Under the pieces are notes generated by a model. It did no database searches. It saw only the letters and a list, made by a program, of their open reading frames with translations, and was not told the origin of the DNA. This document shows, piece by piece, positions 99-63,748 of a stretch of 64,000 nt of DNA (position 1 is its first letter; the number at the start of each line of letters is the position of its first letter). The position numbers and the translations under genes are program-made. Source of the DNA: Haliotis rubra (lineage: Eukaryota); NCBI RefSeq assembly GCF_003918875.1, contig NW_025767308.1, positions 62,001 through 126,000 on the forward strand. Direction: 5' to 3'.

Positions 99-437
99 CA
101 AATGACTGACACTGTTGGTAACATGTCCTCACACACCCTTACCTACAACCACCAGCTTCTGTCCACATTGAGGTATGATGTCAGATACTCCATTATTCCC
201 ACAGGTGTACGTCAAATGACTGACACTGTGGGTAACATTTCCTCACATACTCTTACCTAGAACAACCAGCTTCTGTCCACATTGAGGTATGATGTCAGAT
301 ACTCCATTCCTCCCACAGGTGTAGGTCAAATGACTGACACTGTGGGTAACATTTCCTCACATACTCTTACCTAGAACAACCAGCTTCTGTCCACATTGAG
401 GTATGATGTCAGATACTCCATTATTCCCACAGGTGTA
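99..437 (-). repeat. 114-bp tandem repeat x3 spanning the 3' end and donor of the gene A V exon
   Basis: Units start at 99, 213 and 327; donor boundaries at 143, 257 and 371. Confidence 0.95.
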
Positions 438-706
438 GTTCCCAGCATCAGATTGGACAACACTACGGAGGTCAAAGGCCATGACCTTTGGGTCAGCAGT
501 TAGATTCCCGGTGTAGGTGACACGAGCTGTGTAGTTCCCTGCTACTTGGTGGTTATTGGCTATGTTGGCCCCTATTACTGCAGCTCCAGATGGACTGATG
601 ACAAACAGGGAAATGAATCCCTCTGGTACAGCTGGTACCTGCCACCTGAAGCTGGCTGTCTCAGACTCCCTCACTAACACAGGCCTGGCCAGCTGGGACT
701 GTACAC
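371..706 (-). CDS. Gene A V-like Ig exon (gene continues beyond left end of window)
   Basis: Acceptor tttccacag|GT at 706, donor CTAG|gtaag at 371; 336 nt, phase 1-1; D-x-G-x-Y-x-C motif (SDAGNYTCG), ends CGQKLVVL. Confidence 0.9.
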
Positions 707-1683
707 CTGTGGAAACATTGTCTTATATGCTCATGTGCGCAGTGATGACTTAACGCCCAGTCTACGATGATTTTAAAGAGTGTCACGCAGTGTGTCAAAC
801 TTAGTTTAAATGAGGTTCCGATAATCAAGGAGGATATTTCAAGCATCAGTTACAAAACTTAAGTTGTGATAACGACCATAAACTAATTTGCAGTTTGTGT
901 ATTCAGACTTATATATTGTTAACAAACGCACTTATACCGACATCAGAGCAGAGATATATCATGAAGATCCCATTATAGATGCTTTAGTTTTACATATAGC
1001 AGCCTTGTACACCAAAGACAGTGAGAAATGACAATGTATCTTTTATAAAGAAGTATCTCCAGCATCACGACCAGTTTGACCCATTACATCCTACAGTGTT
1101 TTCTGACCCGTTCGACAATTTCTGCAACTACAATGCATTCATTCTGATATATCCCTACTATACAGGAAGAAACAATCCACAAACACGAACCTAAATGGTT
1201 TACAATTTAACACTTAAAAATATATATTTCTCTATAGACACTTCGCAAAGCATATGGAAAGATTAGCCATAAACTAAAACAGACCTTTTTACAATGGCCG
1301 TACATTAGTTTTAAACCCGAACTAAGATCCAAACACGGATTGCACATTAAGTCAGTACTAATGCCAGCGCCAGTTTACATTCAAATGCCTCCTCTTCGGT
1401 TGCTAGTGACATGATACCCCAGATATTATTTCACTGATTTCTACGGACGCAAAGGACTTCTAAGGAGGTGCACTGTTTCACCGAATCCTCTCGGACAATG
1501 GAGAAAACACAACACAGGGTAGAGATTGTTCATTTTTTGCATTTGGCTAAATGTATTAGAAATGTAAAAACGGATATTGTATTGGATCTGACCCGAACAC
1601 ATCGAGGAAAGTGGAAGTTAGTTAATAAGGTAAAATCTCACCTATGTGTGTGTAAGAGTATTACAAAAATAGAATAAACCTAC

Positions 1684-1762
1684 CAGTGATGACAATTCCG
1701 ATAACATACATCATCAAACCCGCATGCAAAGTTTCCATGAAAAAACTGGTCGGATTGGTCAT
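1684..1762 (-). CDS. Gene A signal-peptide exon
   Basis: MTNPTSFFMETLHAGLMMYVIGIVIT+G; 79 nt, phase 1; donor gtaggt; upstream acceptor ctttacag implies a non-coding first exon. Confidence 0.7.
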
Positions 1763-3392
1763 GTCTCTGTAAAGAAAATGATTTCTGGTTGAATTTAACA
1801 ATCAGTATCATTGTCACATGTCTGGTTTAGTAGGGATTTCGATATATGTTGTCTCTCTTATTGGTTTCCCATAAAACCAATTCTTTATTTATTCATTCTT
1901 CTGTATTCTTCATTCTCTAAGCATGTGCAAAATGACGTTAAGCCAAACTCACTCTCTTATCCAAAGGTAACACGACAAGTCATCTACCTTTGGTCTGTCG
2001 AAACTTACAGGTCAGCTTCCAAATTCAATGCACCTAATTCGATTCATCGAGTTTGAAACGTGGCCAGTTGTAAACACATCGACTCCATGCTGTCACTTTT
2101 CCAAATGTATTCCTTTCATGCGCAATAATGGTATCGACACCAGATTGCTTGTTGTTCGTAAGGACATTTCAAAGTCCACTATCTGCGCCCCTGGTTTGTC
2201 ATTGGAAAGTGCCTCGTAGGAAGCAATATCATTATACTTGACTTGTACACTTGAGTAGTACACTGAGTTGTATCAATCTTCCAGTAGTATCTACCGTGAG
2301 ACGCCCTTGCCAACCATGTCAGGAATCGAACCGGGCATATGTCATATTGTCATGACACATTGATATTTGTTCTGGAACGATAACTGAAATATGTTGTCAA
2401 TCCGTAATTGGAACTCCACCACTTGTAGCAGTCATTATATTCGTGAGCGACCTAAACGAAATCCGTTGCCCTGAACTGGCAGGATATGCTGGTGATATTT
2501 CCGTGGTAAAATGCAGATTAATCTCACCAGGCCGCCTTTGTGTGTGTAGTACAACGTTCCTGTGGGCCGTCTGTTTGCGTAAAGCTTTCAACGGTGAGTG
2601 CTGACAAGTCATGCAGCACTCATAATCCATATGTACATGTAACTGGTGGTCACCTGTGTACACATACAGGTAGGAGGACCCTCGCTGGCGTATTGCCAAA
2701 TGTGTTTCTGCTAGAAGTAATGGAGGTTATCGTAGAGTGTAATATAGATACCTACACCTCTTGTTGTTTCATAACTCCCTGAAAGAGAACGCCAGCACCT
2801 GAAAATACGTACACTTAATATCCCATCCTAAACGTATCAAACCCTCTTGGATTCACTGTGTCCGACTACTGCGCTGTCTTTGCCTGGGTCTCCGTTTGGG
2901 CCACGGGTCAAAAGTACCCGGATGATTGTTGCATTGCCTAAAATCAACACTCACCTGGATTCAGCTGGTATGGTCTTCTAATTTGTATCTTATCCATGAA
3001 GCATCCTATCTACGTCTGGTGGAAACCTGAATACAGTGCACTAATAATATCACACATCATACTTCCTCATTGCTGTCGGGTAGGACGGGCTATATTTAGA
3101 TCACATATGTGGTAGCTCAGTGGGGACACATTCGTTCTATATTGATGTCATGCTCTAGTGATCCTTCAATAACAGAACATTTGCCTTATATACGAATGCA
3201 TTGTGTGGAGAAATGAGATTGCAAAGTCACCAACCAGTCTATATTGTAAATTCCTATTCATAATTAACTGGGTGAGTTTGCAACCAATCAACCCATGTCA
3301 AGGATTATCGGATGCACATTTCACGGTTGATATGTCTCATTGTATTTCAGCCATATCCATTTATTACTACAAGAAAGCATCCAGCACCGTTG

Positions 3393-4092
3393 GATGTGGA
3401 ATAACACTACGTTTCCCTAATGGCGGACCCCTCTTGACTATTGAATAGTGTCTCCTAGTGTTGAATGTTTACTTGATGTCTTTACAAACTTCAAGACCCG
3501 ACACTGACGATGTGGAATACCTCTACGTCTCCCGAATGGCGGGTCCCTCTTGACTATTGAATAGTATCTCCAAGTTTGGTATGTTTACTTGATGTCTTTA
3601 CAAACTTCAAGACCCGACACTGACGATGTGGAATACCTCTAAGTCTCCCGAATGGCGGGTCCCTCTTGACTATTGAACAGTGTCTCCTAGTGTGGTATGT
3701 TTACTTGATGTCTCTACAAACTTCAAGACCCGACATTGACGATGTGGAATACCTCTACGTTTCCCTAATGGCGGGTCCCTCTTGACTATTGAATAGTGTC
3801 TCCTAGTTTGGTATGTTTACTTGATGTCTTTACAAACTTCAAGACCCGACACTGACGATGTGGAATACCTCTACGTTTTCCGAATGGCGGACCCTCTTGA
3901 CTATTGAATATTGTCTCCTAGTTTGGTATGTTTACTTGATGTCTTTACAAACTTCAAGACCCGACTCTGACGATGTGGAATACCTCTACGTTTCCCTAAT
4001 GGCGGATCCCTCTTGACTATTGAATAGTGTCTCCTAGTTTGGTATGTTTACTTGATGTCTTTACAAACTTCAAGACCCGACACTGACGATGT
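3393..4092. repeat. ~116-bp tandem repeat, 6 copies
   Basis: tgtggaata recurs at 3395, 3511, 3627, 3743, 3859 and 3974. Confidence 0.95.
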
Positions 4093-4879: not shown

Positions 4880-5655
4880 AATACTACACGAGGTCTCATT
4901 ACATACGAATTATACGAAACTCGTGACCTTCCTATGGTTTCCGACCTATGGTATCTGACCGAGCGAAAGCGAGGTCGGAAACCATAGGAAGGTCACAAGT
5001 TTCGTATAATTCGTATGTAATGAGACCGAGTGTGGTATTTTATTTATTACCCACGTCTTACATGCATTGAATAGACAAAATAGCGTATTTTTCTTATTGA
5101 TATGGTTTCAAACCGAAACCGGTTTCATAAAGAGGTTGCGGAACAATTTTGTTCTGAAGTACACTTTTGCATGACGTCACACTGTATTGACGTCACTACG
5201 CCATTCTCGTCTGTCCCCTTGGTAACCGACGTCACTATGCATGTCAGTTGGCATCACCTCTCGTACAGCCTCCTACAGTAAACTACTCCGTAGCACCCCG
5301 TTTCTTTGTTTGCAACTGCTTCACTCGGCTAACATCACTGGTGGAAACATTGCGTTTATGTTTTTCGACGGATATATTGTCTCAGTTCGACTCACAATCA
5401 AATAGCAACACGGCAACATTCGCAATGTTTACATTCCTACAATGCATCTAAGTTGTAGAATGAATGAATTCACGTGTTTGTTATCAATGAACAAGCAGTT
5501 CCGTCACAGCTGACCTAACTGAGAGGTCATCGGTTATCCAATCAAATCGTTAGAATCTCAGGTCAAGTCGTTACGACACAGGTCAACGCGTCAACACTCG
5601 TGTGACGTACGATATTAGTATGCAACTACCCATACGTTGACCACGTGGGTAATAA
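4880..5655. mobile_element. Non-autonomous element with long terminal palindrome and short inverted repeats
   Basis: Palindrome arms ~4880-4947 / 4972-5039; ttattacccacgt (5044-5056) is inverted relative to acgtgggtaataa (5643-5655). Confidence 0.6.
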
Positions 5656-6195: not shown

Positions 6196-7060
6196 TCACG
6201 CATTCCTATAGTGAGGATCTGAAAACAGAAGATCAGTTAAATGTGTCACATTATTATCGTACACAATATGCCCAAAATAAAAATATTGCATTCTACACTA
6301 GAACAGAATCTCAGGTATCTGTTGGAAACTAACACTGCTTCTTGTGTACAATTTATTATTGTAACTTTCCTCTCATTCAATACGATAGATCACCTCAGTT
6401 GTGGGTACCTTGAGGTTGAGAGCCGCTGTTCTGGTATGGAGAAGCGCTGATGGACTCGTATGGTATAGGAGGCGTCTCTGTCATGTCTTCGTAGGTACTT
6501 GTTTCTGGTTTTGCATCGACTAACAAAAATATATACACATTATTATATACCCTTCCAAACGTAAACACAACGATACATATAATACCTGCATTATGGCATG
6601 CCCTTATTACACTTATGACTGAGTCCTATAGTAATGTAAGAAATTGTATCTATCTACCGCTTGTATTCTCATACACCTTCAGCTGTGTGTAATGTTGTCT
6701 TTCCGACCCCTCCGTATCCATGGCTGGGGATTCAGCTGGACTATTGATGTGATCTGCAACAAATCAACATGAACATATATTAACGGTATTAGTACATCTC
6801 GCTATCAGTGATCATCTCGACTAGAAATGTTTAACCTACCAAGGGATGAATATCCTGTGTTTTCCATTTCTTCAATTTTCGGATTTCTGGTGCTTCAAAG
6901 GCAAGTAAGGTCGGTTTATTGAACTTTTAATGGACATAAACACATTAAAATAGTTGATGTTGAGATCTTAGTAGAAATATCATTTTACTTTATTTCAAAG
7001 CAGATTATTTCAAAACGTTTTATTTACATGCTTAACCTACCTTTTTTGCTGAAGCAGATC
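6196..7060 (-). CDS. Gene B cytoplasmic exons
   Basis: In the paralog frame they encode GYSSL, HYTQLKVYEN, STYEDM, IPYESI, PYQN and DPHYRNA*; exon sizes 53 and 111 nt match paralogs. Confidence 0.8.
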
Positions 7061-10000
7061 CTGAAAGAAGAGAATACATATATAGTGCCCTGTAAAATAA
7101 ATATCACAAATGACGAATATGGCATTTGGGAAATGTTGCAAACGAATAATGAGATATGCGAAGGAGAAAGATCCAATAAACAACACACTGCATATAAGCA
7201 GCAATTGGTGATACACTTTTCGTGCCATTATGGATTGTGTATACATTCAAACTACATGATGAGTTCATTATGTTCTTTTTAATTCACAATGTCACTCATC
7301 TTTATCAGTTAAAGTCTGAACTGAAACATCGCGTCTGTAAATATCTCCACAACGCTTGTTGAATCTACTTCCAATGCTACTGAGATTTACCTTTCATGAC
7401 GTTTCCACACCTGAGCCCCTTTCTGTAGAGTACCGTTAGAACTAGTCCTTCAATCAGCAAGGTAAGAAATAGGGTTCCTATTGCGGTTCCAGCTATTACA
7501 CCTGTCACGTTATAGTGGTCTTTAAGTGGTTCCGTGCTAGTGGGACCTGAAGTATAAATGTTAATTACGTGGTATTACAAATGATTGTATGTTTACTGAT
7601 TATATTCTAAAGAGCTGACATGTATGTCAAGCTGTGTGTTCTGTTCTTGACAAAGGTGCCATCTATCTCTAAACTGCTGCGTCTAAAATATCCCCACAAA
7701 TAACATGTATACATACCGTATTAACAGTAATTCATCTTACAATTGAAAGTGCAACATTAACTATATAGAGAAAGGATAGCTTGCGGTTAAAATCCCTAGT
7801 TACATGTACTATATCCCAAGCGAGGAGAGGAGATCGTACAGCTGAAGATAGGAAACAAAGGGATCTCAACCAATACTGATCTACAATTCAATGGAACAAA
7901 GGAACGGAATACAGCAAAAAGTGTAAATTGTATTTGGAATCCGTGGTATTCCTGTAAATCCATGGCCTGGCCAAAACCTGAAGGGTCCATTATATACGTC
8001 AGGTTTTGTCCTTGATACGTGTCGCTGTTGGTAGAATGACTCTTTGTACCTGTCAGTCCATTCAGAAACAGTTAATGATACTCACAGCTGACGTTGAATG
8101 TCCTGACATCAGTGTAGTTGTATCCTCCATACTGCCACGTCCCCAGACACTGACACTGTTGACCATGTTGACTCCTGCTGACAGTAAAGGAGAGAGTAGA
8201 TGTCCTGGTTTGACCACTGTCACTGACCAATGCAGATCCAGTGCCAGGACAGGACCACGTGATTGTAGCTAGAGGATTTCCTCCTGTCACCGAGCAGCTG
8301 ATTGTCTGTGGGTCTCCTTCAAACATCACATCCGGAAACTGTGTGATGGAAGGAGGGACAGGCGGGGGGTCTGAAACAGAAACAACCAAGACAGCAACTA
8401 TGATCAAAGTACAGATGTAACAGCAGAGCCCATGACCAAAATGATCTCAATACAATTAGCTCAGTATTTCCTCACCCAATGAAATCCGTTCATCCGATAG
8501 TATACACAATGTATCCAAGAGTGATAATCTCCTCTGTATATCACTCTCCTAGGCAACACTGTTTACATTTATATGCAAATTCCATATGGTTTTCCGATGC
8601 ACATCAACACAACGCGAATATACAAAAGATTGCACAAGCGCATACCAAATACTGAACATCATCATCATGTTGAGTCGTTATTCTTTAAAGGGAATACTGA
8701 GAATACTTAAGAATACTCACATTTGACATCCAGTGACACAGAACCAGTCTTAGTTGTCAAAGTCCTTGTGTTTCTGACCTGACATCTCACGGTTGTCTTG
8801 TCTTTTTTTTGCATGAAGGTGAGAGTCTGGTACCACCAGGTAGAAGATCCTGTCACTGACCCCCTGCTGCCATCTACAGGTGTTCCATCACTGTAGTCCC
8901 AGGTGAAGGACACGTTGGGATAAGCGGAGGCAGTACAGGTCAATGTCAGGTTTCTGTTCTCTACAGCTACAGAGTTGTCTGGTTTTGTCACATCAACCTG
9001 TTCTGGACCGACTGTAATACAGAGCAATAATCCGTGGCAGCGGTGATATCTGGACCTCTTACTGTATTGACAGTCTGTTATATGTCTACATGCTCGTCGA
9101 CATAAGGTAAATATATATCTTAACGACTCTCATCTTAACGAAAACTTATTTGATCTTCTTAATTTATCATCTGTGTCATGTTATTCAACTAGGTTACTCT
9201 ATTCACTCAGTGTGGCAATTAGACAAGTATTGATTGGCTGACATGAGAACTAAACTACTACTTAATATACAACTCACACCACACTCCTATCCGGGCGCTG
9301 TCAGACTGCACTGGGGAGGGGTTGTGGATGTTGGTGGCGCGACAGTAGACTGTATGACCAAGGTCACCTCTGACAGGAGTGAAGGTCATTGTACTTGTGG
9401 TCTGGACAACGCCTGATTGTGGTCTATGATCAATGGATATCCCACTTGCCACCAGGACACTGTTCTTGAACCACGTGATTGTGGCAGCAGGGTAACTGTC
9501 AGATGCCACACAGGTCAAGGTCAAGGGTTGACCTTCAGCAGCTCCCACTTCCTGATTGGCTGACGTGATGTTTGTTAGTGACACACTGTTGACAGCAACT
9601 GGATAGAAAGGGAAAAGGAAAGGAAATAACGTATATAACGGTCATACCCGACATGTCAATATCTTAGGGATAGAAAAAGTATCTCAACAGCATGAATGAC
9701 ATTTCAGGATACATCAATACATGTGCTTACTGTCAGGAAAGGAATAAGTAGAGTTGACTCTACACTGTGTTTTGGAAGCCTGGCAGTAGTACAGGAACAG
9801 GAAGTACCTGCTGTTGGATATCACACACGTATCTACACATACATTCGCATTACTTACTGTCAGGATAGGAATACGTAGAGTTGACTGTAGACTGCGTGTT
9901 GGATGCCTGGCAATAGTACAGAGAGTTTCTACTGATGGAAATCAAACTGTTATCTAAAGAAACATCCACATTACTTACTGTCAGGAAAAGAATAGGTAGA

Positions 10001-12576
10001 GTTGACGATAGACTGTGTGTTGGTTGCCTGGCAATAGTACGGTGAGTTCGTATTGTTGGATATCAAACTGTTATCTAAACAGACATTACTTACTGTCAGG
10101 AAAGGAATATGATGAGTTCACTCTCGTCTCTGTATTTGATGCCTGACAGTAGTACAGGGAGTTCCTACTGTTGTCTGTCAGCTGGTAGTTGATGGTGGCT
10201 GTCAAGCCAGTGTATCCCTCTACTGCTGCTGGGCTGGTGGCCACTCTGGTTCCGTCTCTGTACAGCGTCACTGACGGCGGTGGATTGGAGACAGCGGCGC
10301 AGGTGACAGATGTAGTAGTTCTAGTAAGGCTAACACTGTTCAGAGGAACTGAAATAATAACACAGCTTTATGAAGTATGCTGTCTCCGAGTTGAGTGGTG
10401 GTGGGGGTGAAAGATACAGGCGATAGATGAAATAGTTTCAAGGGATGGTATGACTGGTCAGAAAAACAGAACTAAATATCTTCATAAAGTACAGTGTATC
10501 TGTGTAGGACGGCAGTCTTTTGGAGACACAGACGATAGATGCAGTAGTTCTGGAGATGGTAACGTTGGTCAGAGGAAGTTACAATAATAACACAGCTGCA
10601 GTACGACACTACAGATTTGAACAATTGAGTGTTGAGGTTTGAAAACACAGGTGATGTGACATCCATCTCACATACACCGCACTTTAGCCAAATGTCAACA
10701 TGGCAAACGTACCTAGTACATCCATCTGTATCTGATTACTCTCTCTGCCTCCAAACTGATAGTCACACCTCCAGCCGAGTCTATCCCTGCCGTACACGAC
10801 GTTGTTGATGGTGAGGGTGTAGTTGGTGGAGCTGGGGCAGGAGGTGGTGTAGTCAGCTGGGAGGTAGGGGGAGGTGGAGCTGCAGCTACCCTGGTTTACG
10901 CTGTATAATAAAGTTCCATTCTGCCACTGTATAGTTGTATGTGAAGCGTCTCCTGTGTAACACATCAGGGTACAGCTCCCTCCTGCCTGTACAGAACCTC
11001 CACATGATGACGTCAGCTGATAGCTCTGGGCAGAAACTGAAATTCACAGAACGATGACAACAGCATGTACATACTCTTTACGGAAATCAAAGACTTCAGA
11101 ATCAGAATAACAACACATGACTATATATTATAGACAAAATCTTCTCCTTCCGGTAAACAACTTATCCGACTTATTCAGCACTGTTGTTGTCATTGACGTC
11201 ATTTCTTGTGTCATATTGTTTCACGATGCAGAGGAACATGTGTCCCAGTCATCCACGATACCAGAATTCGCTTTGCGGAGTTGAGTCCCTTTTCGGTGTG
11301 CTGGAAAAATTCCTGAGGGTTCAAACACCAGCGGTTTACCGCATTATGTGTCTTGGTATGTCAGCACCAAACCTGTTTTTAACCAAGCTAAATGTCCACG
11401 CTGTGCATACATCCTGTCATTCCACCTTCATCAACATGACACACCAGGCCGTGACTCACTTACTGTTTAAACCAGTTTTAAACCCACACTCATCTACTTA
11501 AACATTATTCTTGTTATCCTAAATCTTAGGAAGCAAGGTGTTTAACTCATTCGGAAGTTTGAAACTAAATCTTTCTTCGGTTTGTCTGAAAGTATAGGAA
11601 ATTGATTATTTCTTCGATTTTGCTTTATGTTCCTAGCTATTACACTCTCTGTTTAGGCCACTTTGTCTGTTATCAACGCTGCAGGCCACTATATAGCTGT
11701 CTGCTCTGTCCTACCGGTCGTTATCAACGGTACATGTATACATACAATCTACTTCGTACAATCTACTTCCTGGTTTTATTTTAGGTGACTGTATATGTGG
11801 GACCTGAGGTGTGAGATCCGTTGCGTTACCCCTAATGCATTTACAACTTAAACATGTTATAGACATACGTGTACCTACCCCGTTGTTTGTGAGGAATGTC
11901 CACCAGTAGAGTCCCAACTGTGAAGATAAGACGGAGGTACAGTACAGACATGTTGGTGGTGTGTGAAACTAGATACTAGCACTGGTGAACAGTGTATGTA
12001 ATTATACTTCCGGTTGTGTTGATATGCTAACTGGATATGTACAGCTTGATGTGTGTCATTCAGACGGGTATTCAGAGAAGTAGGTCGTATGTCACACATA
12101 CATTTAGCAGGTTGTGGAGTTGGGTGACAGTGTAGCTTTGTCGATTGTAATCTGTGTAGACATGGCATTCAGAACACCTGGATATTCACTACAGGTTACA
12201 TGTTGCTCAAATCAACTAGGTTGTGAGTCATATATAGTGTTGGGCGACAGGGTATATGTGCACTTACTATTTGTCTGAGTGTCTGTATATGTGCTTTAAA
12301 ATGTGGCTGTGTAGACGCTATATACCCATTGATGTAATTACCAAGAGTCGGTATACATTCATACAGAATACCTGCAGATTTAATGTGTGACTTGAACTAG
12401 TGTCTAAGACTAGTCTCTAAACAAACTTGTAGAAGTCTTCAATATGCCAGTCTCCAATGTTGAAGCACTAGAGAGGGATTTCTCGAGTTTCACAACATAT
12501 CACAACATGATAATGAATAAATGAAACACTTACATATACATTTGCGTATAGCAAACAACAAAAGTATCAAATCCAT
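6196..12576 (-). CDS. Gene B: IgSF receptor (leader, 5 Ig domains, TM, tyrosine-motif tail); possible +1 frameshift in tail micro-exon
   Basis: Exons 12534-12576, 10713-11036, 10094-10348, 9278-9598, 8721-9011, 8086-8370, 7391-7546, 7041-7060, 6840-6892, 6658-6753, 6409-6519, 6196-6218; all GT-AG; domain exons are multiples of 3, phase 1. Confidence 0.85.
7391..7546 (-). CDS. Gene B transmembrane exon
   Basis: 156 nt; GVIAGTAIGTLFLTLLIEGLVLTVLYRKG. Confidence 0.9.
8086..8370 (-). CDS. Gene B Ig domain 5 exon
   Basis: 285 nt; ISCSVTGGNPLATITW...CQC. Confidence 0.9.
8721..9011 (-). CDS. Gene B Ig domain 4 exon
   Basis: 291 nt; LTCTASAYPNVSFTW...VRCQVRN. Confidence 0.9.
9278..9598 (-). CDS. 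Gene B Ig domain 3 exon (C2-like)
   Basis: 321 nt; LTCVASDSYPAATITW...VYCRATN. Confidence 0.9.
9731..10075 (-). repeat. Three diverged copies of the 3' third and donor of the gene B Ig2 exon
   Basis: CCTGACA|gtaag boundaries at 9979, 9858 and 9731, each preceded by an open YYCQA...S[FY]PD frame. Confidence 0.9.
10094..10348 (-). CDS. Gene B Ig domain 2 exon
   Basis: 255 nt; VTCAAVSNPPPSVTLY...YYCQASN. Confidence 0.9.
10713..11036 (-). CDS. Gene B N-terminal Cys-rich V-like exon
   Basis: 324 nt; CTLMC..IQW..YTLTINNV..DRLGWRC; six Cys. Confidence 0.88.
12534..12576 (-). CDS. Gene B signal-peptide exon
   Basis: MDLILLLFAIRKCI; 43 nt, phase 1; donor gtaagt. Confidence 0.75.
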
Positions 12577-12858: not shown

Positions 12859-14647
12859 ATTCTACCATGACTTCAGTAAACACTGGATTGTGATTGGTTA
12901 ATTAAAGTCATTCAGAGGTATATAATCACGTTATACTGGTCTCTGATTTTCCGTGCGCAATTATACATGGTTTACGGTAATGCACTATTTTTGTCTGCCC
13001 ACCAACATGGCGGACACCAAACAACCTACCGATGCATCGATAAATTACGGCGATTTTGCTGTCGGAAATTACACATATGTCTTTAAAGATGGATTTAGCG
13101 ATGACGGGCTCGACTCACTACTTGCGTAAATCACAGCAATAGGTGTTTATACATACAAAAGTACTTCGAAAGCATGGAAACAAATATTCAGTCGAACAAG
13201 ATCAAAACATCGTCTGCTTTCCGAATAAAAAATCAGCAAGAACAAATATGTTTACGTTGATTCTATGTTATGTCAGAATAGATCCAGCAATAGACTGCTA
13301 CATAATTTCCGTGTTAAATTTATTATCAGCTTTCGTCAACGATATCGCCACTGATCTTGATCCGGTAACGGAGGATGCATTAACATCGAACGCCGAAGAA
13401 ATTTGAATCCCTTCCGTCCACATAAATAAACAGTTGGGTTATCAGTTCAAACAAAATGATATTTTGAAATTTGTACTGTTTCAAATTTAGCGGTAGTAAT
13501 TACAGAATCTGCAAACCGTTCTGTTTAGCCCAACATATTTTTTTCTAAAAGTATAATATCGTTGAAAAAGTTATTTAGCTTAGTCATGATCCCTCTTATC
13601 CATTACACTGCTTGATCTAAAGTAGTCTATTAAAGTATAATTAATTACCTTACCGTGTTTATGCCAGAGGTACACCCTCATGTCCTGTTCCATCCTTTCG
13701 GAAATATCACCACAAATCTGGCTCTTTGTCAACAGCCTCGCGAACATGCCAGCGAATCCGATTCAATTTGAATTCACTACACTTTGAAGCCACTAGGTCA
13801 CAAAACACTTTCCAAAATGTAAAAAATAATATCCGTAGAATCGAATTTGAGCACAAAGTACACACATGAGTGTGTAAGGGTCACCACAGCTGTCGCACGC
13901 AGACGTAGAGGTGCGTGAAATCGTCAAGTTGACAGGGCGCAAAATTCAACAGTATCTAAATTCGGTACAACACGGACTTCTCGTTACAGCAAAAGCGCCT
14001 CTACTCTTAAATTTTGTACCAGTACCAGTAATTAGATATCAAAGACTATCTCAGTCATACAATCAGGTTAACCTTGCGCAAACTGTCAGAGGCTCTCCTG
14101 TCGCATCTTTCCAAATTTGCACGTAAATGTAAACAATGACTTCCGAGAAAAGGTCAAGGCCATGAGGTTGCTGCCATTATTCTGGTGGGGAAAGGGTCTA
14201 CGGTGGAATTTTCAAATGTGAACCAAGCTTTTTAAACTTATTTGATATATGTTTTCCAACTTATCAGTTAATGATCGATGATTAATGCATTGAAAAAACA
14301 AACCGTGATTTGTTATTACTGAATCTGGAGTTTGTTAGTTATTGACGGTCTGCCACCAATCACCCCGTTTCGGGCGATGCCACTTGAGATTGGAATGCGA
14401 GGCCGCTTCACGTATTGACTCATAACCAAAGAAAGAGTTCCACCTGAAATTGTTCATAAAATAGTCATGGTAGAATGGAGATAAACCTACTGTGTTGGAA
14501 AATCAGAGGTATATAACGAAATTATAATAGCTCTAAATTGTTCATTTAAAACCTCACGCTACGCGTTCGGTTTTAAATGAAATTTAGAGCTATTATAATT
14601 TCAGGTGTTATATACCTCTGATTTTCCCACACAGTAGGTTTATCTCC
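12859..14647. mobile_element. Second palindrome-ended non-autonomous element
   Basis: attctaccatgact (12859-12872) is inverted relative to 14463-14476, which is followed directly by a ~170-bp palindrome at 14477-14647. Confidence 0.6.
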
Positions 14648-28970: not shown

Positions 28971-29017
28971 TCAAATTGATCAGCTTATACAGCAAACAAT
29001 GTTAGTTGAAACAGTAA

Positions 29018-38054: not shown

Positions 38055-38056
<2 letters not shown>

Positions 38057-38115
<59 letters not shown>
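38057..38115. repeat. (CA)n(TA)n microsatellite
   Basis: Seen directly. Confidence 0.95.
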
Positions 38116-38149
38116 CTTAGGATATCTGGAGGAAAATTTCAAACATAAA

Positions 38150-42288: not shown

Positions 42289-42331
42289 CTGCTATCACAT
42301 ATAATATTGCCGCTTGGGCGGTCTTCGTCAT
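42289..42331 (-). CDS. Gene D signal-peptide exon
   Basis: MTKTAQAAILYVIA+G; 43 nt, phase 1; upstream acceptor context resembles that of the gene E leader. Confidence 0.65.
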
Positions 42332-53800: not shown

Positions 53801-55949
53801 GTCTGTTCAAACTGACTGGAGATTTAGATGAGTATGGTAGGAATGAGACTTGTGCTTCCAGTACTCACACTGAGGCTCCATGTTGTACATCTGGCTCCAA
53901 TCTGACTCCAGGCCCTGACTTTCTCTCGCTCTACATCTGTAGTTGTGACTGTCCCGGGAACTCACGGTGAATGTATAGGTTGGACCAATGGTATTAACTG
54001 TGATGCTATCGTTGTCACGCTGCCAAGTGTAAGTCAAGACCAGACCATGGTCAGCTGGGACAGAGGTAGAGGTGGAGTTGCAGGTCAAGGTCACTTGCTG
54101 GTTGTAGACAGGTGTTGTTGACACTGGACGACCAGGTGTTGTGGGTTTACCTTTTACAGCGATAAATGTCTTTGAGTTTAACGTCTCCAGTCTATGTGGG
54201 GACGGTCACCATAACCATGTTAACAAGTGCAGATCCCCTATGTACTACGAATTCCAAACAACCCTCACATTACAACGACTGTAAATATATTCAATGAGAA
54301 CTCAGCTTAATTGTAACTTCGTGTTTTCAGGGTTCCTTGATAACTGTTCTTTGACCTTATTTGTTTGCATCATCGTTATCGCCTTAACCTGCTCAGAATT
54401 CACTGCCACTTTTTGAACTGCCACACCACGTATGAATAGAAATCAGTAAGCTGAGTGACGTTGTATTATGCATCAATGCGCCTCTGCGATACGAAAACAC
54501 GAAATATGCAGTGATTTGTTTCTAACGTGGAGCAGACACCATGTATATTACAACTCGTTGTCTTAAAATGTATCCAATTTGCTTTCTTATCTTTGTAAGG
54601 TAAATGGTATTTGATTGACACTCATGTGGTAATCACTGTCTAAAAATCCCAGTACATGACTGCCAGGAGCTACATCCGAATCATTCAGTTAGAATGCAGA
54701 AATACATGACGCCCAAATAGGCAACACGATAAAAGTATTTGTTCCCCACTGTAATCAAATTGAAGATTAAGCTAAATATGCCTGAATCAAACAGACCCAA
54801 TTTCCGCATTCCCTTTGGTTCCCAAAATGTCAATGTCAATCTCAAGTATGTCACTAATATGCCTACGAGCATCAGTTTGGCTACTGAGTGGCCGGCTTCT
54901 CGTCTGATGGAAAATACCAGTATAGTTTCACCTTCAATTTTCAAAAACTAACAAATGATGAACACAAAACTCTCTGATGAACAGTGAAGTATAGTTCCAT
55001 TACTTCATTATCAACACCAAGGACGTAATTCACTTCAAAAAATTCCTTTTCGTGTCCACGAGGAAATATATTCTTCCGCGAGACAGTTAGCAGCTGCCTC
55101 TGTGTGTGACCAGATTCACATTAGGTTACACATGCTGAATGATAGGTCATACATCATATATATTGTACTGAAATAGTGATTTATTCATAGTAATGTCAAC
55201 AATATGGAGAGAAGTAATATACATGTCTCTCCATAATATTTATTGACTCTGACATCCATACATGCACATACGTAACTAACCTTTATGTATCGAATTGCTA
55301 TCTGGGTTGAGTACATACCGACAGTTGGTGCTGCTTAAATATAATCTATATAAATTCAATATCGACTTACCCAGTACAACAAGTTTCTGTCCACAGTTGT
55401 GTATAACATTGTATACAGCCCCAGCCCCACACGTGTATGTCCCTGCATCAGATGTCTGGATGTTGCTCATGGTGAAGGTGACGTTCCTAGATGTTCTGTT
55501 TCCCTGAAACCCCAGTCTATTGCCGTAAGATTCATATGGGATTAACAGGCCAGAACTCGTCAATATGAAAACACCAATCCCAGCAGGATTGACGGTGAAG
55601 TAAACAGTCCCAGGCCCCAGACTTCCGGGTGGAATCTCCCAGCTGAACCTGGCAGTCTCCGACACCTTAGTCAGCACTGGCCTGACAACTGGTCCACCTG
55701 AAGAACCACCTGCAACATATGTGTCTCCAACATCATGCCATTCCATGCCACCTTGCCCGATGTAATGTAAATCTCAACACCAAAATAGTTGTCTTGCCTG
55801 ATGTAATGTAATCTCAACACCAAAATAGATGTCCAGTAATATGTTATGTGTAATTGTTTTCAAAGAGATGTTGATTCAAATGCGACAGGTTTCTCCTTCT
55901 TTGCAGACTTACTTGCAATCACAGACAGGATGACAGCATAATACAACAT
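47459..55949 (-). CDS. Gene E: short IgSF receptor (leader, V, Ig, Thr/Ser/Val stalk mini-exons, TM, distinct tail); last exon unresolved
   Basis: Exons 55913-55949, 55371-55709, 53869-54150, 51185-51277, 50639-50740, 49073-49210, 48462-48470, 48354-48375, 48109-48152, 47733-47822, 47459-47548; all phases join in frame. Confidence 0.72.
48583..49040 (-). mobile_element. Dispersed repeat copy (uninterrupted version of 29018-29620)
   Basis: Direct similarity to 29018-29620. Confidence 0.75.
49073..49210 (-). CDS. Gene E transmembrane exon
   Basis: 138 nt; GFIAEVAGGVLFVVVVVVVVVVVLMKTR; acceptor ttctgttttag, donor gtaggt. Confidence 0.75.
49860..51640 (-). repeat. ~540-bp segmental repeat with nested ~105-121-bp exon-end repeats; contains stalk mini-exons 51185-51277 and 50639-50740
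   Basis: Similar intron blocks at ~49860, ~50820 and ~51360; extra donor boundaries at 50518, 50397, 50292 and 50181. Confidence 0.8.
51672..51866. repeat. ~62-bp tandem repeat x3
   Basis: ggcacg..ga.tta.a..aggacag...gagtgcaaccacc recurs three times. Confidence 0.85.
53869..54150 (-). CDS. Gene E Ig2 exon
   Basis: 282 nt; VTLTCNSTS..YTW..NYRCRARE. Confidence 0.9.
55371..55709 (-). CDS. Gene E V-like exon
   Basis: 339 nt; ARFSWEIP...SDAGTYTCG...CGQKLVVL. Confidence 0.9.
55913..55949 (-). CDS. Gene E signal-peptide exon
   Basis: MLYYAVILSVIA; 37 nt, phase 1; donor gtaagt. Confidence 0.75.
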
Positions 55950-58900
55950 GTTTGTTACGAGGCCCGTCCGTGATATCTGAAATCAAGTTCAATGGAAGAG
56001 ATCACGTTCATATTTAGATAGGAGAGTAATCATGAGTAATGACTGAATTATCAGAATCATAACACCCCCTTCACAACTACAACTATATTCTAACTTTCTG
56101 TCACTTTCGTCAGCCTCTGTTAGTTGCAGACACAGGTTAAGTCAAATTGTCAGCTTCCATTCTGTCTAAATATCATCATCAATGGTCCAACATGGATGGC
56201 GTCGAGAGGCCATCAAACAAAGAGGAAGCATAGTTTATATCCGATATGCACTTACGCTGACCTCAACTGCTGCACTAACAACTCTTGGTGAATAGAGCTG
56301 TTAGAGGCGTGAAGCGCACGGCGACTTGTGTGACATGTGATGAAGTGATGAGGTTCATAACACTATGGCAATACTGTGACATAATGCGTGCACCCCCTGA
56401 ATGTATTCCAGATAATGTCATGATGGTATGGCTGGATGAATCGTGGGTTATTGCAGCATTTAGTTCATGGTCAAAGACGCAGGATACACATTAGTGGAAA
56501 GGTGGCGTCTTATCATGCAGCATGCTGGATCAAATCTAGGCTCGGATTTCCATGACTATCATTCTGAGAGGAACCCTGCTGTATTTATGGAAAACGTTAG
56601 GAATAGCTTATCCCAGCATAGCCTAGCAAATCTGTGATCGTTGAATTCACGTCTATTCTGTAATAATTTATTGTATTAAACCAAAGTTAAACTAGGTCCA
56701 CATATCAACAGACTTACCGCCATCCGATTTCACAGGAAGATCAATATAGGAGATGACAAAACCACATGTTTTTGGTTTGCTCAAAAGTCAGGTGTCTGCT
56801 ATCGAGGTTATATGCTTCTATTCTTTCTTCATTGTCATGCCGCTATTGCACTGTGTGTACGTTATCAACGTTCAGAGGTGTCTAGCTACTGACCTGTCCT
56901 ACCCACCCACAGATACGCGTTATCTACTTCCTGGTTCTATTTTAGGTGGTTATATCTGTTGGGAGTGGGTCGAGAAGCTATCAGACGTGTTGCGTTATTA
57001 CAACAGCAACCAGAGCCTTTAAAGGTCCTGCATGTACGAGGTACGTACCAACGACTTGCTTCTAAGAAATGTCCCAACTGTGAAGATAACACGAGGCTGC
57101 AGTGTGGACATGTTGATATTATTAGTAATGGGTATTTATAAAGCGCACATATCCACGCAACTAGTACATGCTCAAGGCGACGGAGTGTTCCCTTAATCAA
57201 CGGATGTCGATTTTTATGGTATTCCTTTTTTTCAACCAACTCAACTCCATGGGGAGCATTCGACTTATGCAGCCAGTTAAACGAAGCGGGTTATCACTCA
57301 GCCTCGTCCTCACAAGGCACCTATTTGTAGCTAGGTGAACTGGGACACGTAGTCACGGTATTTTGTTCAATGATACGTTACTATAACTGCAACTAGGTGT
57401 CCACAAGTGTCACAATTGTCACAAGTGGGGATCGATGCAGGCACCTTTCTTTTACTAGCGCTGCGCCTTAGACAGCCCTGGTAGTGTGTGGAACTACATG
57501 TGTGTGTGGAACTACAGGTATGTCACACGTAATATATATTGGTGCTTGAGTACAGTGTAAATATACTTCAGGCGACTATGAACATGATTTAAATGAAAAA
57601 AACAAATCTGGATTTTCCGTGCATGATTCGTTTATATCCGACGGGAAGCCAAAACGCTGGGGCATGTCATGCATATATTCAGCTGATATTGATTGACAAT
57701 TGTGTATTTGTCCAAGAGCCTGTTTTTGCACCTGCTGGTGGTAGTTGAGGGACGTACGGGAGGATATACTTCAGGGATGAAGTATAAGATGACAGATGCA
57801 GTGGATATTGATGAGAAATTGCCGTTGGAAAGATAAATGTTGTTGAACACTTGACAGAGCGCACACCGGTTCTGAGTGCCCAATTTTCCCAGAGTGGACA
57901 CCCGCTCCTTGTCACTTAGAATAAGCCGGAAGTCGATTTTTCATCGTCGACGAAGTCGTTGGTGAGACGACGGCCTTAGTCAACGCCACGACTCACCGCC
58001 CTATCCGTCAGCGTTGTCGATAGCTATCGCTGGGAAGTAATAGTCCCAACCCAGCGGTCTGTTTGTGGTGAAAAGGGAATACAGCGAATGTCAACTGATT
58101 CAGACAAAGAACATAGAATTTCGATGCATTTTCACTTGAACACATTTGTTTGTGATCAACACTATAGCCTTACTGGGGACAAATCATTTCTGACACCACA
58201 ACAAGCTATAGTACACGCCAACCTGACTAGCAGATAACAGAGTAGACAGGACGTGAGTTATCCTGAGCAATGCCATCTGTATTGTACTGTTATCTGCAGA
58301 TTTGCTTTGCTATGATCAGATACCAGTCGTTGAAGCTGTTATCACATCAAAACTCGGGGACTCCAGATGACCATCAGAATAATCGACCCAATTCAAGCGA
58401 GCATACATTTGTCAAAATACTGTTTTATTTGCTATGGAGATTGGCATGCACACCTTCATCTTTGTGTTTGTTTAGGTTGATATTTGTGGAGTTTTCCAAA
58501 TGCATTGAATGGAAGAATACTTCACACAATCTCCTGATTCTAAAGCTTCTGCTTGACCAGTACAAACTGGCAAACTGTGTTTGTGGTCGTGTATGTAACA
58601 TGTTTCCTGCGCTTGGGTTTTTAATAACCTTTTAAGTGGTAAGAAATAACTACTTGGGTCGGTATTGTAGAAAAGTGTTATTGTTCTTTATGTGTGTATC
58701 ACGCCATGATGGTATTTATTTTTATTGGTCAAATGATGTTTTTTTTTTTAATGAACATCTGTTGAAATAAACAGGCTTCATAGCCTTGGCTACTTTCTTG
58801 ATATCATTCCCGAAAATGGATCAGGCATATAAGGTGATTGATATCAGTGTGAGCAGTGGAAGAAGGTTATGGATTTGTGATGGTACACCTGTTAAATTTG

Positions 58901-59614
58901 ATAACCCCTGTGTATTCATTTCAGGGCAGTTGCATATACTTCTTAAAGAAATATTGCTGATGACTAAATGTAATGCAATGAAGTATGTGCATCAGTTCAA
59001 AAAACCCGAGATCTGTTCTTCAAGCTCTCCTTATTTTGCCCCAAATCATCCTTGAGGTACCTTCATAATGGTCATGTTAATTACGTTTGAATCATGAAAT
59101 ATTGAACCTTTGGAGCGACTCTCGCAGGGCGACCACTGAAGTCTAGACAACATCTTGATTCATTGGTGGAAAGTACTGGAGGTCAAACGATGTTAGCAGA
59201 TGGTACTTGTTTATACACCTCTTGGTCAGCGGCTTTAGTGCCACATGGCAAAGGCCGGTTGTTCGACCTACAGGGGGAATAATTTTGTATGCAACGTGAA
59301 ATACCTTTTCACCTCGCATCTCAGTCTGATCTCTGACTAGCTATGAGTTATAGTCACAGTCGTTGCATATGGTTAAGTTGGAACCTTGCCGCCATCATGT
59401 ATACACGATCACAAAAAAAGGTCTGAATATTGTTTCTGAAAATTATATTTTAATTTTTGGTATGTAAACTATGAAAACAGACATGAACATAACCAACATG
59501 ATTTCACCTCTGCGACTGTTTGGGTGTCTAACAGTGATTGTGTATGTATGCATCGCTTGATTACTATGTCTGGCAAGCATAAGCTAAGGTGAATAAAACA
59601 TGATGACTGACTGA

Positions 59615-59777
59615 CTGAGTGAGTTTGGTTTTACGCCGCTTTTTGCAATATTCCAGCAACATCACGGCGGGGGACACCAGAAATGGGCTTCACACATTGT
59701 ACCCATGTAGGGATTCGAACCCGGGTCTTCGGCGTGAAAAGCCAACGCTTTAACCACTAGGCTACCCCACCGCCCCC
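59615..59777 (-). mobile_element. Full-length tRNA-derived SINE
   Basis: Minus strand reads ggggcggtggggtagcctagtggttaaagcg...ggttcgaatccc...gctggaatattgc..(actc)n. Confidence 0.88.
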
Positions 59778-61842
59778 AAAAAGATGAAAGTAATAAAGAC
59801 GTTATGAGCAGAGCAAAGACATATAATGCTCTGAAAATGTCTCTTGGTCTGTGACTGAAACTGATGACACGATAACTACCCATCTTTAGTTATTTTGATT
59901 GTCAGGACCTGAAAAGTACAAAAGTAGATGTCATTAAACATAGCAATGTGATCAGAATAATGAAAAATGTATTCCAACGGAACAGGAGATAAAGGATATG
60001 TTTTAGTTAGATGTTATCGAACTATACTCTGACCTAGTTCATCCATGACGGTGTAACGCGATTAGAATCACCAGGAGTGGTTCATGGTTTGGTTACCTTG
60101 GGAATGTGCCCCAGTGTTCTGGTATGGCAATGCAGTGTTGGACTCAAATGTCACAGGGGGAGTCTCTGTCACGCCTTCATAGGTACTTGCATCTGCTGCA
60201 GCATCTGCTGAGAAGATGTTCATTACATATTTTCAAGAACGAATTTGAACTACAAATCCATTTTACTGTTACGTGGGAGCGGGGATCTCATCATTAACTG
60301 TTTAAAAGAAACAGGACTGTATAATAAATTGTATCTTTGCATGTCTATAAACAAATATGTATGTATATGAAGAAAGTGCTTTTAACCTTGCATTTAGAAA
60401 CTTGTCTACGTGTGTTTACTTGGTCTGATCACAATATGGCTGAAATAATGCCAATGCAACGTTACATGTGACGCCATTCATACTCACTTGTAATGTTTTG
60501 AGGGAAATACCAACATCTACAAATACCTTTTGTATTCGCATAGATCTTCAACCGTGTGTATTGTTGATCTTCTGATTCCTCTTCCAAACTGGGATACCGA
60601 GCTGGGCCATGATGTCGATCTGAAGCAAACGCATATGAAAACATTATAATTGTCTCAGCGCTGAACAGATAATTCGATATTGGCGATATCAACAAAACGA
60701 AAACCACATACTTACTTAATGATGAATATTCTCTGTTTTCCATTTCCACAGTTTCAGAATTCCTGGTGGTAAAACAATTACAAGATCGGTTTCTGACAGA
60801 CCATGATGGATAAACGTGCGACAAACATCATTATGTAATACGTATATATCCCTTTATCTTATTTAAAGTTGTCCATACATTGTATTTGATATTGAAATAT
60901 TGACTACCTTATTTCCGTTGTTCCAGTTCCTGTAAAACAAAGATCGTGTACAACACACATCACAAATGGAGACAGTCACGTCAATCGTAAATGAAATCCA
61001 CAGAGAATTGGTAACGTTTAACATACTTTCTGTTGGTGCAATATATGTCCATTTCTGGAAACATAATGGTGGTAACATCCTAATAAGAAATCGTTCTCTC
61101 AAACACATCACTCAATAAAATATATTATTATTGACTCGAAATAATATTCGATCCTTTGACAACGGAAATGTATCTATTATACCTTTGGGTTGTTTTCCGA
61201 ATCTCTACCCGATTCTGTGGAGTACCATGAGAACAATTCCCACGATGACCAGGGTGAGGAGTATGCCGCCTCCTGCCGTTACTGCTGTCACTTCAGTACT
61301 AAAAGTTGGAACTTGGAGCCGGTGCTGGGTTGGTGGATCTACAATATAACAGGGACATCATAACGGAACAGTGCTTACCGTACGTCACTGTACACTGGTG
61401 ACACCCAGTTACTACTTATTACTTCTGTCGAATCACCAATATAACATGTATTCAACGAGTAAAGCTGTGTCTTGGTTTTAGTCAAACTGATAATGCTAAT
61501 CCATTGATATGGTCTCCTAGAACATAGCATTAGATACAGTAATAGGTTTCGACTATTTATACACAGACCTATAATCACCACATGATACACGATGCTGTGT
61601 TGCACCAAGATATGTAAAATCAGTTCCGTTTAGTATTAATTAAAATACACTGACTATACTAGTTAGTCGAAATTACTCTGATATAAATGAGATGGCTTAT
61701 CAGTGTGAGGATATGGCGTAGTATCGACCCAGAGAGAACATGCGTTGTTGTAAGACATCAGTTTGGTGCTGGAGCGGACAAGTTTGATCTGACTGACAAC
61801 TAGATGAAGTAATTTGTTGGGTTCTTTTTGAGTGACACATAC

Positions 61843-62140
61843 CCCCTGCAGTCGTAGTTTCTACAAGGACATATCTGTCAGAATCCCCAAAGTCATTCTT
61901 AGAAAGTAGTCGGAATGTGTAAATCTTTCCTGGTGTAAGCCCGGTCACTTCCACGACCATCATCTCGCCTAGGTCATCATACGATTTATTAACAGTCCAC
62001 GTTCTTGTAGCAAACTGACGATACTCAATTAGAAACGTCTGAGTGCGTCCACCATTGAACCCAGGCAGCCACGACAACCACACCGACGACGTTGTTGCAT
62101 TATCCAGATCTCGAAAATTGTGTAGGCATCATCGGTGGCC
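61843..62140 (-). CDS. Gene F FN3 exon (+1 in the A-run at 62114-62117)
   Basis: WLPGFNGGRTQTF..GLTPGKIYTFRL. Confidence 0.75.
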
Positions 62141-62996
62141 CTTACAACAAATCAATAACAAATCGAATGTTATAATCTGAGAATGTTTTTATTTTCATGT
62201 TAAGTTTAATGGATATAATGAACAAAATAGGTGATTCCTAAATGAATGACTGAGTTTTAAATTGCAGTCACATCGGCAGTATTTAAGTCACATCGTGACT
62301 CAAACATTGCCAGTTCAAAAAACGTACATTATGAAACCTCTGGACAAACGATAGTAACACGACAGGACTATCACGGATATAGATTTAACACTAGCAGTGA
62401 AGCCGCTTTTAGCACTAATCCAGCATTATCAAGACGGGACAACAAATATGGTATTCCGTCAATATACTTCAAATCGCTATTCAAACCAATGCATAATGCA
62501 TACGGGCAGCAGTCCACCAGAAAGTGGAGTTAGGACATCACAAAAGGAACTATGAGGACTTAAGAATACTTTAGCCATTTTGATGGTACTCTAACTTCAG
62601 GATTTACACCATCCCTCTTGCACTGATGGGTGTTAAACTTATGCGAGTAGCTAACATGAACACAAATACTACAACTGAAAAATAATGGACGCTGAAAAAA
62701 GAAAATGGAGGCTGAGAGGGACACATAATTAAAGCTACAACATCGCTTGAAGGTACAGCCATTAGCAACTAATTAACTAAATAACTAATGTTCACATGCA
62801 TAGTACATGGATATATTTGAATGCATTATCAATTGCTGAAACAGTTACCAGAATCTTGCTTTTGAAAACTATCGAACATTATCGTATTTAAGTAGCATGA
62901 TGCTATCATACCAAAAACTGAACGAAACTATACCTATCCTTCGCATTATGGACCACTTTCATCAGCAAGCTGCATGTACAAAACAGTGGAATGCAT

Positions 62997-63154
62997 NNNN
63001 NNNNNNNNNNNNNNNNNNNNNNNNNNNNNNNNNNNNNNNNNNNNNNNNNNNNNNNNNNNNNNNNNNNNNNNNNNNNNNNNNNNNNNNNNNNNNNNNNNNN
63101 NNNNNNNNNNNNNNNNNNNNNNNNNNNNNNNNNNNNNNNNNNNNNNNNNNNNNN
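62997..63154. other. Assembly gap
   Basis: Run of N. Confidence 1.
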
Positions 63155-63451
63155 ATTCAGTTTTTAGTTAATTTATGTGGAGAGTTTAATATATGTTTGG
63201 TTATGCTCCCATCTTACTTCCATCTTGGTGATGAAGAGACAACAGTGTTCGAACAGATGCAAAATCACTTTCACGTCATCATGCACTATCCAGCTCTAAA
63301 ATTAATTCAGTGCCAGTATCTTCCCTTACTGTATTGCCCCAAAGTGGCCTATGCTTTTATATATCAATATATCACCCCGAATGACGCAAGGCTGGGGAAG
63401 TTGGTTGTAAAGGGTGAATCGTTAAAGCGGTATCACATGTAAGCCACTCAC

Positions 63452-63748
63452 CTGCTCGCACTACGCTGACTCCGTATGTCACTAACCCGCCCACTCCATT
63501 GTCAACTGTCAGACTGTAGTCCCCGAAGTCCTGCTGCTGGAGGTTAGTAAGGTGTAGTCTGGCAGTGACTGAGATGTCTGAGACAGGGCTGGAGGAACCA
63601 GTGAGGTCCTGGCTGGTGCTGATGGATCTCCTCCAGGTGAATGTAGGAAGGGGGTAGGCTAGGACTGACACAGACACAGACACGTCACCACCCAGTGTAG
63701 CAGCGAACTTGAGTGGCTGGGACTCTGAGACATCAAGTCGTGGAGAAC
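63452..63748 (-). CDS. Gene F membrane-proximal Ig exon
   Basis: 297 nt; near-identical to the D and C paralog exons. Confidence 0.88.

Follow-up and report, generated by a model that had tools for sequence, protein, structure and literature searches.

The window analysed here, a stretch of 64,000 nucleotides (positions 62,001-126,000 of scaffold QXJH01000605.1 in the Haliotis rubra assembly GCA_003918875.1), carries six co-oriented genes for receptors of the immunoglobulin superfamily (IgSF), as a preliminary description of the sequence had stated. All six are on the minus strand, and their phase-1 Ig exons are bounded by AG and GT. We letter them A to F from high to low coordinate; A and F are cut by the window ends. 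By analogy, and with a probability of roughly 0.55, we suggest that these single-pass abalone recognition receptors work like the paired-receptor families of vertebrates (KIR/LILR, SIRP, CEACAM), having arisen independently. Whether invertebrates possess diversified Ig-type immune receptors wired to signalling through immunoreceptor tyrosine-based activation or inhibition motifs (ITAM, ITIM) is a long-standing question, for which the examples we found are Hydractinia Alr, the Botryllus fester receptors and one oyster gene. The abalone family would be a large molluscan case, masked by automatic names and open to testing, with a candidate immune role. Abalone are a farmed group with serious infectious diseases.

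The six genes, with TM denoting the transmembrane segment, are as follows.
59886-63748, minus strand: gene A, 3' part; Ig, FN3, TM and tail, with no V exon inside the window
47093-55949, minus strand: gene B, intact, corresponding to RefSeq XP_046545512.1 (LOC124255658)
31532-42331, minus strand: gene C; leader, V, Ig2-Ig5, FN3, TM and tail
15810-25394, minus strand: gene D; leader, V, Ig2-Ig5, FN3, TM and a tail with ITIMs and without a strict ITAM
6196-11951, minus strand: gene E; five Ig exons, no FN3, a TM with Glu and a tail with one ITIM
371-1762, minus strand: gene F, 5' part; leader 1762-1684 and V exon 706-371 (Trp/Cys/Cys class)

The locus is modular, being built from three classes of head, one shared stalk and two TM/tail classes. 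The N-terminal domains form three classes (B/C/F, D and E) that have no useful mutual alignment. Genes A, C and D are 90-91% identical in nucleotides in Ig5 and 83-89% in FN3, and B/C Ig2 and C/D Ig4 are 89% identical; recent duplication, which had been proposed, is clear from such values. Gene D has the stalk of gene C from Ig4 on, placed under a different head (a C-W-C V domain plus a duplicated Ig). The Ig domains of E are 56-60% identical to those of C and D, which is background, so that E shares the TM and tail only, while B has a TM and tail of a class different from that of A, C, D and E; FN3 is found solely in A, C and D. Similar membrane-proximal modules, as described earlier, are seen in Ig5 and FN3 of A, C and D; B and E lack FN3. 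Relatives 72-86% identical to the D-class and E-class heads occur in H. rufescens and H. cracherodii, so that these classes are older than those species. Overall, tandem duplication and shuffling of exon modules have placed varied heads over a shared stalk and varied TM/tail modules beneath the same head.

The tail features that bear on signalling are listed below.
32861-32706, minus strand: gene C TM exon
31745-32226, minus strand: gene C tail exons, with YSSL-x8-YSNL-x8-YTQL (ITAMs) and STYEGV and VTYESL (ITIM consensus)
61338-61183, minus strand: gene A TM exon, with TAG at 61205-61207 right after the helix
Five exons downstream of that TAG, minus strand: gene A tail, with two overlapping ITAMs and one ITIM
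49210-49073, minus strand: gene B class-2 TM; tail without the class-2 ITAM exon
47822-47683 and 47548-47409, minus strand: gene B duplicated tail exon

Motif definitions were taken from PMC9546547, a strict ITAM being Yxx[LI]x6-9Yxx[LI]. Tail types were called by motif consensus only, and tail exons were concatenated solely for motif counts, with stops kept in place. Tyrosine-motif tails are present as the preliminary description had it, with the restriction that a strict ITAM occurs in the window only in C (two overlapping copies, shuffle P 0.0004) and, behind the stop, in A, whereas A, C, D and E all match the ITIM consensus, as does B in its last RefSeq exon. Thus C combines its ITAMs with two ITIMs, D and E have the ITIM consensus only, and A has both types behind its stop. 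Among 42 class-1 tails from the family, seven tyrosines are conserved at 100, 80, 100, 95, 93, 98 and 98%; 25/42 carry ITAM and ITIM together and 16/42 ITIM only, and the difference lies mostly in the middle YxxL. The tail exons evolve at ω (the ratio of nonsynonymous to synonymous rates, dN/dS) of 0.35-0.40. The second TM/tail class has an ITAM (YSGL-x9-YTEL type) and no ITIM; gene B fits this class (E 1e-14 to 1e-21 for most members). In H. cracherodii, the class-2 gene P0178, a single and non-chimeric one, directly follows the dual-tail gene P0007, their identity being 81% for V and 87-96% for Ig2-5. Judging from such sequences, the same ectodomain appears to carry dual, ITIM-only or ITAM-only tails, even in adjacent genes, which is a paired-receptor layout, and the likeness to paired receptors noted earlier is strengthened by these two tail classes. 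A third and distant type of tail (P0011, P0211-P0213), with the ITIM consensus and a TYEKL/AYEKL end like that of oyster CgIgR, was also observed under ectodomains of this kind.

Like KIR/LILR, SIRP, CEACAM and CD300, the abalone genes form a tandem birth-and-death cluster with near-identical ectodomains under opposite tails and a diversifying membrane-distal Ig face. Unlike in those families, to which there is no homology, the abalone ITAM stands in the receptor's own tail and not in an adaptor, and most members carry both motifs.

The N-terminal domains of four genes, with that of F given above, lie at the following positions.
55371-55709, minus strand: gene B V exon, Trp23/Cys93/Cys107 class
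41162-41506, minus strand: gene C V exon, V-set fold predicted; reference for the positively selected sites
24315-23959, minus strand: gene D V exon, second class, canonical C-W-C
11036-10713, minus strand: gene E N-terminal Ig, third class, followed by four C2/I-type Ig exons

The first domain of gene C is predicted to adopt a V-set fold: its model (predicted local distance difference test, pLDDT, 78) resembles a VHH antibody domain (Z 12.5), a T-cell receptor V-delta domain (12.3), and nectin first domains and P0 (12.0-12.1; nectin-1 12.0). The single-sequence fold of D's V (pLDDT 52) is of low confidence and too poor for interpretation. In 57 domains of the B/C/F class, the B-strand pin position holds Trp (54/57) or Phe (3/57), and Cys93 and Cys107 are present in all 57, probably joined in an F-G disulfide; the D and E heads have canonical cysteines. 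Variation within the B/C/F class is concentrated at residues 32-38, 44-45, 48-63 and 95-102, and the remainder is nearly invariant. Using our own code for the GY94 codon model, uncalibrated by simulation, on 11 V exons from four species, we found M2a to exceed M1a by 41.7 in twice the log-likelihood difference (2dL), with ω 3.1 on 20% of sites. The selected sites (34, 35, 38, 44, 45, 50-52, 54, 56, 58, 59, 73, 101 and 102) map to the C-C'-C'' face and the F-G loop. The same comparison gave 0 for Ig2 and FN3 and a non-significant 4.6 for Ig5, and non-V domains evolve at ω 0.3-0.4. The V signal persists without gene B (39.2) and without H. rubra sequences (25.7), and the variable patch, when given its own tree and lengths, yields 2dL 16-22 (16-18, with ω 2.2-2.9, for the patch alone). 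A reading of the variable parts as antibody complementarity-determining regions (CDR1-3) was rejected: pairwise dN/dS over structure-defined CDR-like loops is not significantly above 1, and for this reason the C-C'-C'' face with the F-G loop is favoured. About 15 sites on one V face, together with the tail variants, are thus named as specifics for assay.

Trees built from short alignments point to different histories for head and stalk. A quick tree of Ig5 requires 11 changes of species label and unites H. rubra with H. asinina (Shimodaira-Hasegawa-like approximate likelihood ratio test 95), the V tree requires 20 changes, and the V of gene C is sister to one from H. asinina (98/89). Such topologies fit a stalk under concerted evolution and older V lineages: the stalk seems more homogenised within lineages, while V variants appear to mix across species, their diversification being seen on the C-C'-C'' face and in the F-G loop. 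One-to-one orthologs with purifying selection on the V domains, a pattern that would speak for a different kind of locus, are not what we found; there are many paralogs per species, the trees are mixed and the positively selected class of sites is in V only. The proposal of a birth-and-death cluster of recognition-type receptors is upheld by the same data.

Several observations weigh against the reading as paired receptors under diversifying selection. Pairwise dS is 0.33-0.47 in the variable patch vs about 0.2 in the framework, and the patch-average ω, 0.74-0.96, is below 1. Raised dS in the patch is a sign of gene conversion homogenising the framework; gene conversion is able to inflate site tests, and our models allow no recombination inside the patch. 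Within a class, whole V domains have identities of 0.79-0.81 and so resemble Ig4, Ig5 and FN3 (0.77-0.84); the preliminary description, which called the V-like domains divergent, is corrected in that the whole V diverges no more than the proximal domains do. Five of the six window genes are broken or cut. Activating KIR and LILR of vertebrates couple to an ITAM adaptor through a basic TM residue; none of the 42 abalone class-1 TMs has a basic residue (0/42), and 12/42, that of E included, have an acidic one. With dS elevated in the very patch that carries the signal, we rate the support for diversifying selection on V as moderate.

These points could also be accommodated by largely neutral turnover, with a few functional receptors, many redundant or decaying copies, and a patch that reflects escape from conversion and relaxed constraint. 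The near-neutral ω and raised dS of the patch, the many lesions in the window and the frequent stutters at exon boundaries would suit it. We nevertheless regard it as very unlikely: frame-broken exons make up 6/22 in H. rubra vs 0/71 at fetched loci of three other species (Fisher p 1e-4; loci reached via annotated proteins, hence biased towards intact genes), the remaining domains are constrained at the ω given above, and the class with ω>1 survives the patch-specific tree.

The lesions themselves call for caution. As assembled, only gene B is free of them, and A, C, D and E have a frameshift, a stop or a lost acceptor. Gene A has a +1 frameshift in FN3 as well as the TAG after the TM; gene C has frameshifts in Ig3, in Ig4 (at the 3' end) and in FN3 (-2), past which a RefSeq model of 604 aa splices; in gene D, the Ig3 acceptor reads AA, Ig5 has a +1 and FN3 also a 15-bp in-frame deletion; gene E has a +1 in its first tail micro-exon. 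A C-like gene of H. rufescens is open at all of these places. The assembly is a Nanopore/hybrid merge that was polished once with Illumina reads and then scaffolded with RNA-seq pairs (PMC6774278). Some window lesions are complex or a substitution, and true decay of some copies is possible; for several lesions, an error of the assembly is no less likely. Since they concentrate in one Nanopore assembly, the disabled copies described earlier are doubtful as biology, and gene counts, pseudogenes at this locus and several RefSeq models of H. rubra are unreliable.

In searches with a V-exon profile and with a full-length relative, we recovered about 60 Haliotis family proteins from four species, for the most part gathered on a single contig in each species; in H. 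cracherodii, the five members sampled lie between 14.2 and 17.5 Mb. Database searches were done per exon, with RefSeq proteins serving as full-length stand-ins. The V exon of gene C has matches in Haliotis proteins only, and the TM and tail were found only in Haliotis (42 proteins, within the length limits of the search), while proteins of Bulinus and Biomphalaria share the V type and ectodomain with an identity of about 25%. Hence an old gastropod scaffold underlies the family, whose expansion and tail are specific to abalone. Matches outside molluscs are only 22-28% identical, and our searches of papers turned up no description of the family. Among the snail relatives, the unstudied proteins P0069, P0078, P0093, P0098 and P0111 of Bulinus and Biomphalaria have the same non-canonical V, and several Bulinus relatives share one contig, a possible parallel cluster in snails that host schistosomes. 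The GRC, PTC2 and Ig/FN3 clusters of Biomphalaria and Bulinus (PMC7494358, PMC10875847) are likewise gastropod clusters of fast-evolving single-pass genes; unlike the abalone genes, those of PTC2 have no known domains, and the abalone tail is not common to the snail clusters.

RefSeq names the relatives turtle-, nephrin-, hemicentin-, contactin-, CEACAM- or CD22-like, just as the preliminary description foresaw for nephrin and hemicentin, and several models in the cluster are chimeric, extending over 57-277 kb and leaving out the genes in between. The labels stem from a multi-Ig plus FN3 layout shared with turtle/IgSF9, nephrin and hemicentin. Turtle/IgSF9 is a single conserved ortholog with five Ig and two FN3 domains, unlike the abalone genes with one FN3, a non-canonical V and dozens of paralogs, and no IgSF9 ortholog is among the non-mollusc matches. 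The turtle, nephrin and hemicentin names are best-hit artefacts.

The same architecture, close to that of turtle, nephrin and contactin, is consistent with a code for cell adhesion or wiring of the kind seen in nectins and in fly Beat/Side and Dpr/DIP, in which the V face would let paralogs of neurons, epithelia or gametes bind one another; the tyrosines would then serve trafficking or generic SH2 scaffolding, and diversification could come from a receptor-exploiting pathogen or from gamete recognition. Structural neighbours of the V domain include nectin-1 and -3, CAR, P0 and CD2-family domains, the variable residues lie on the face with which those proteins adhere, and YxxL/I doubles as an endocytic motif. 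We consider such a code unlikely, given that two tail classes, distinct from each other, both keep a YxxL-pair spacing of 8-9 residues, that fast copy turnover and tail swapping are unusual among wiring molecules, and that the tail search, within its length limits, found no orthologous tail outside Haliotis.

A further comparison concerns the Alr genes of Hydractinia, to which the window had been likened. Both are clusters of single-pass genes with V, I-set, FN3 or FN3-like and TM parts in this order, one domain per exon; tails of ITAM or ITIM type occur in both, as do pseudogenes, and an aromatic residue replaces the V B-strand Cys (PMC9546547). On this basis, a polymorphic V that binds homophilically and allele-specifically could be imagined, the ITAM/ITIM balance setting acceptance or rejection of non-self abalone cells. 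Unlike Alr domain 1, which lacks both pin cysteines, the abalone V keeps its F-strand Cys and adds one in the G strand. Genes C, D, E and intact relatives have five Ig domains and B has two without FN3, in contrast to one to three in Alr; the abalone FN3 is canonical, and Ig5 and FN3 of P0007 have no Cys, where Alr has six invariant ones in its last I-set domain and in the Fn3-like one. The abalone tail is of a single conserved type that often joins ITAM and ITIM, with paralogs 75-95% alike. No cnidarian protein is among the named matches (most profile-search matches are unnamed, and no direct sequence comparison with Alr was made). The defining features fail, and neither membership in Alr nor homology with it is supported. 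Allorecognition in particular is unsupported and quite improbable; abalone are not colonial and are not known to form fused colonies.

A molluscan parallel is the oyster receptor CgIgR (five Ig, TM, ITAM), which recruits CgSyk and drives phagocytosis by haemocytes (PMC6994640). It resembles the abalone proteins as a five-Ig single-pass receptor with a tail ITAM and a short ETP-x-YE-like resemblance in the tail; it differs in being described as a single gene, with FN3 not reported, as opposed to a large cluster with several tail classes. The tail search found no oyster protein. Based on ITAM/ITIM biology and on the recruitment of Syk by CgIgR, we might outline how the abalone paired receptors would act. 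From an older gastropod V-(Ig)4-FN3 receptor, duplication would have given copies whose V face binds a variable ligand, either a microbial surface or a polymorphic cell-surface protein. A Src-family kinase would phosphorylate the tail, YxxL pairs would recruit Syk/Shark and the VTYESI-type motif would recruit SHP/SHIP phosphatases, so that a copy would activate, inhibit or do both according to whether the middle tyrosine, or a whole tail module, had been gained or lost. The most likely site of such activation or restraint would be haemocytes. It is tempting, though with somewhat less than an even chance, to see here an independent multi-megabase complex of V-domain paired receptors on abalone immune cells, a lophotrochozoan analogue of the vertebrate leukocyte receptor complex, with selected exchangeable heads, a homogenised stalk and module-swapped activating, inhibitory or dual tails.

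The remaining features of the window are the following.
62997-63154, no strand: N gap, intronic in gene A, whose two sides are a candidate single gene
63748-63452, minus strand: gene A I-set Ig exon
62140-61843, minus strand: gene A FN3 exon, +1 frameshift near 62117
55949-55913, minus strand: gene B leader
54150-53869, minus strand: gene B Ig2 exon
51277-51185 and 50740-50639, minus strand: short Ig-remnant exons of gene B
35552-36335, minus strand: tandem ladder at the 3' end and splice donor of gene C Ig3, 54-bp unit
24215-25040, minus strand: acceptor and 5' end of the gene D V exon repeated in tandem, six additional copies, none of which continues into V
23829-23918, minus strand: spare F-G cassette behind the gene D V exon
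11951-11879, minus strand: gene E leader
7060-7041, minus strand: first tail micro-exon of gene E, 20 nt vs 16 or 19 in relatives; the frame shifts unless the acceptor at 7089 is used

The N gap sits in an intron of gene A, between the Ig exon donor after 63452 and the FN3 acceptor before 62140, and for this reason no reading frame crosses it; a plus-strand open reading frame at 62897-63442 passes through the Ns and was rejected as an artefact. Exon order and phases around the gap agree with the paralogs. The intron is 1311 nt as assembled vs 180 and 307 nt in C and D (4-7x), and neither flank aligns with the paralogous introns. The gap is probably a typical leftover of RNA-guided scaffolding. 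Where paralogs are about 90% alike, a scaffolding link could connect exons that belong to two different copies, so that gene A may be a chimera. Over 28,394 bases, the window is identical to the locus fetched for an adjacent RefSeq model.

Pfam finds Ig, V-set or fn3 matches for most exons and none for the V exon of gene F; beyond the window start, F continues with Ig2 at 3 kb and a module from Ig3 to the tail at 25-31 kb. The Ig remnants of gene B are internally deleted Ig exons kept as open spacers of 31-34 codons, one of which is used by RefSeq isoform X3. Behind the Ig3 exon of gene C, the ladder is in frame and offers at least 10 identical splice donors; it recurs in relatives from H. rufescens and H. 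cracherodii (7-9 copies), but the copies seen in H. asinina lack it. The open stretch that follows Ig3 measures 174, 125 and 34 codons in the relatives from H. rufescens, H. cracherodii and H. asinina, respectively. The RefSeq model P0199 joins a GT inside the V exon of gene D to an AG inside the spare cassette (23829-24020), swapping the F-G loop, which may be either alternative splicing or a read-mapping artefact. As a model of gene D, P0199 was rejected, for it links the 5' exons of D to a module 28-31 kb beyond the window. A candidate leader of gene E upstream at 12730 was dropped in favour of 11951, which agrees with relatives and RefSeq. Upstream of gene B (56900-57115), two pieces resemble the leader exon and first intron of E (82-85% over 41-45 nt) and are probably what is left of an E-type 5' end.

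In B, D, E and F, tandem duplications repeatedly span the end of an exon (99-438, 9726-10173, 24215-25040, 47409-47822 and 50117-50690) and copy donors, acceptors or F-G ends, with periods of 105-121 bp in the arrays and about 270 bp in the B tail exon. A tRNA-like short interspersed repeat lies at 59610-59775, 28394-28785 and 19217-19317 and is seen in other abalone loci as well; tRNA gene calling found none. Between E and F, a 116-bp tandem array of six copies (3393-4092) is apparently non-coding. By eye, we also noted inverted-repeat-like elements, one palindromic between E and F (4900-5050) and a pair upstream of E (12870-12990 and 14490-14640), which are possibly miniature inverted-repeat transposable elements.

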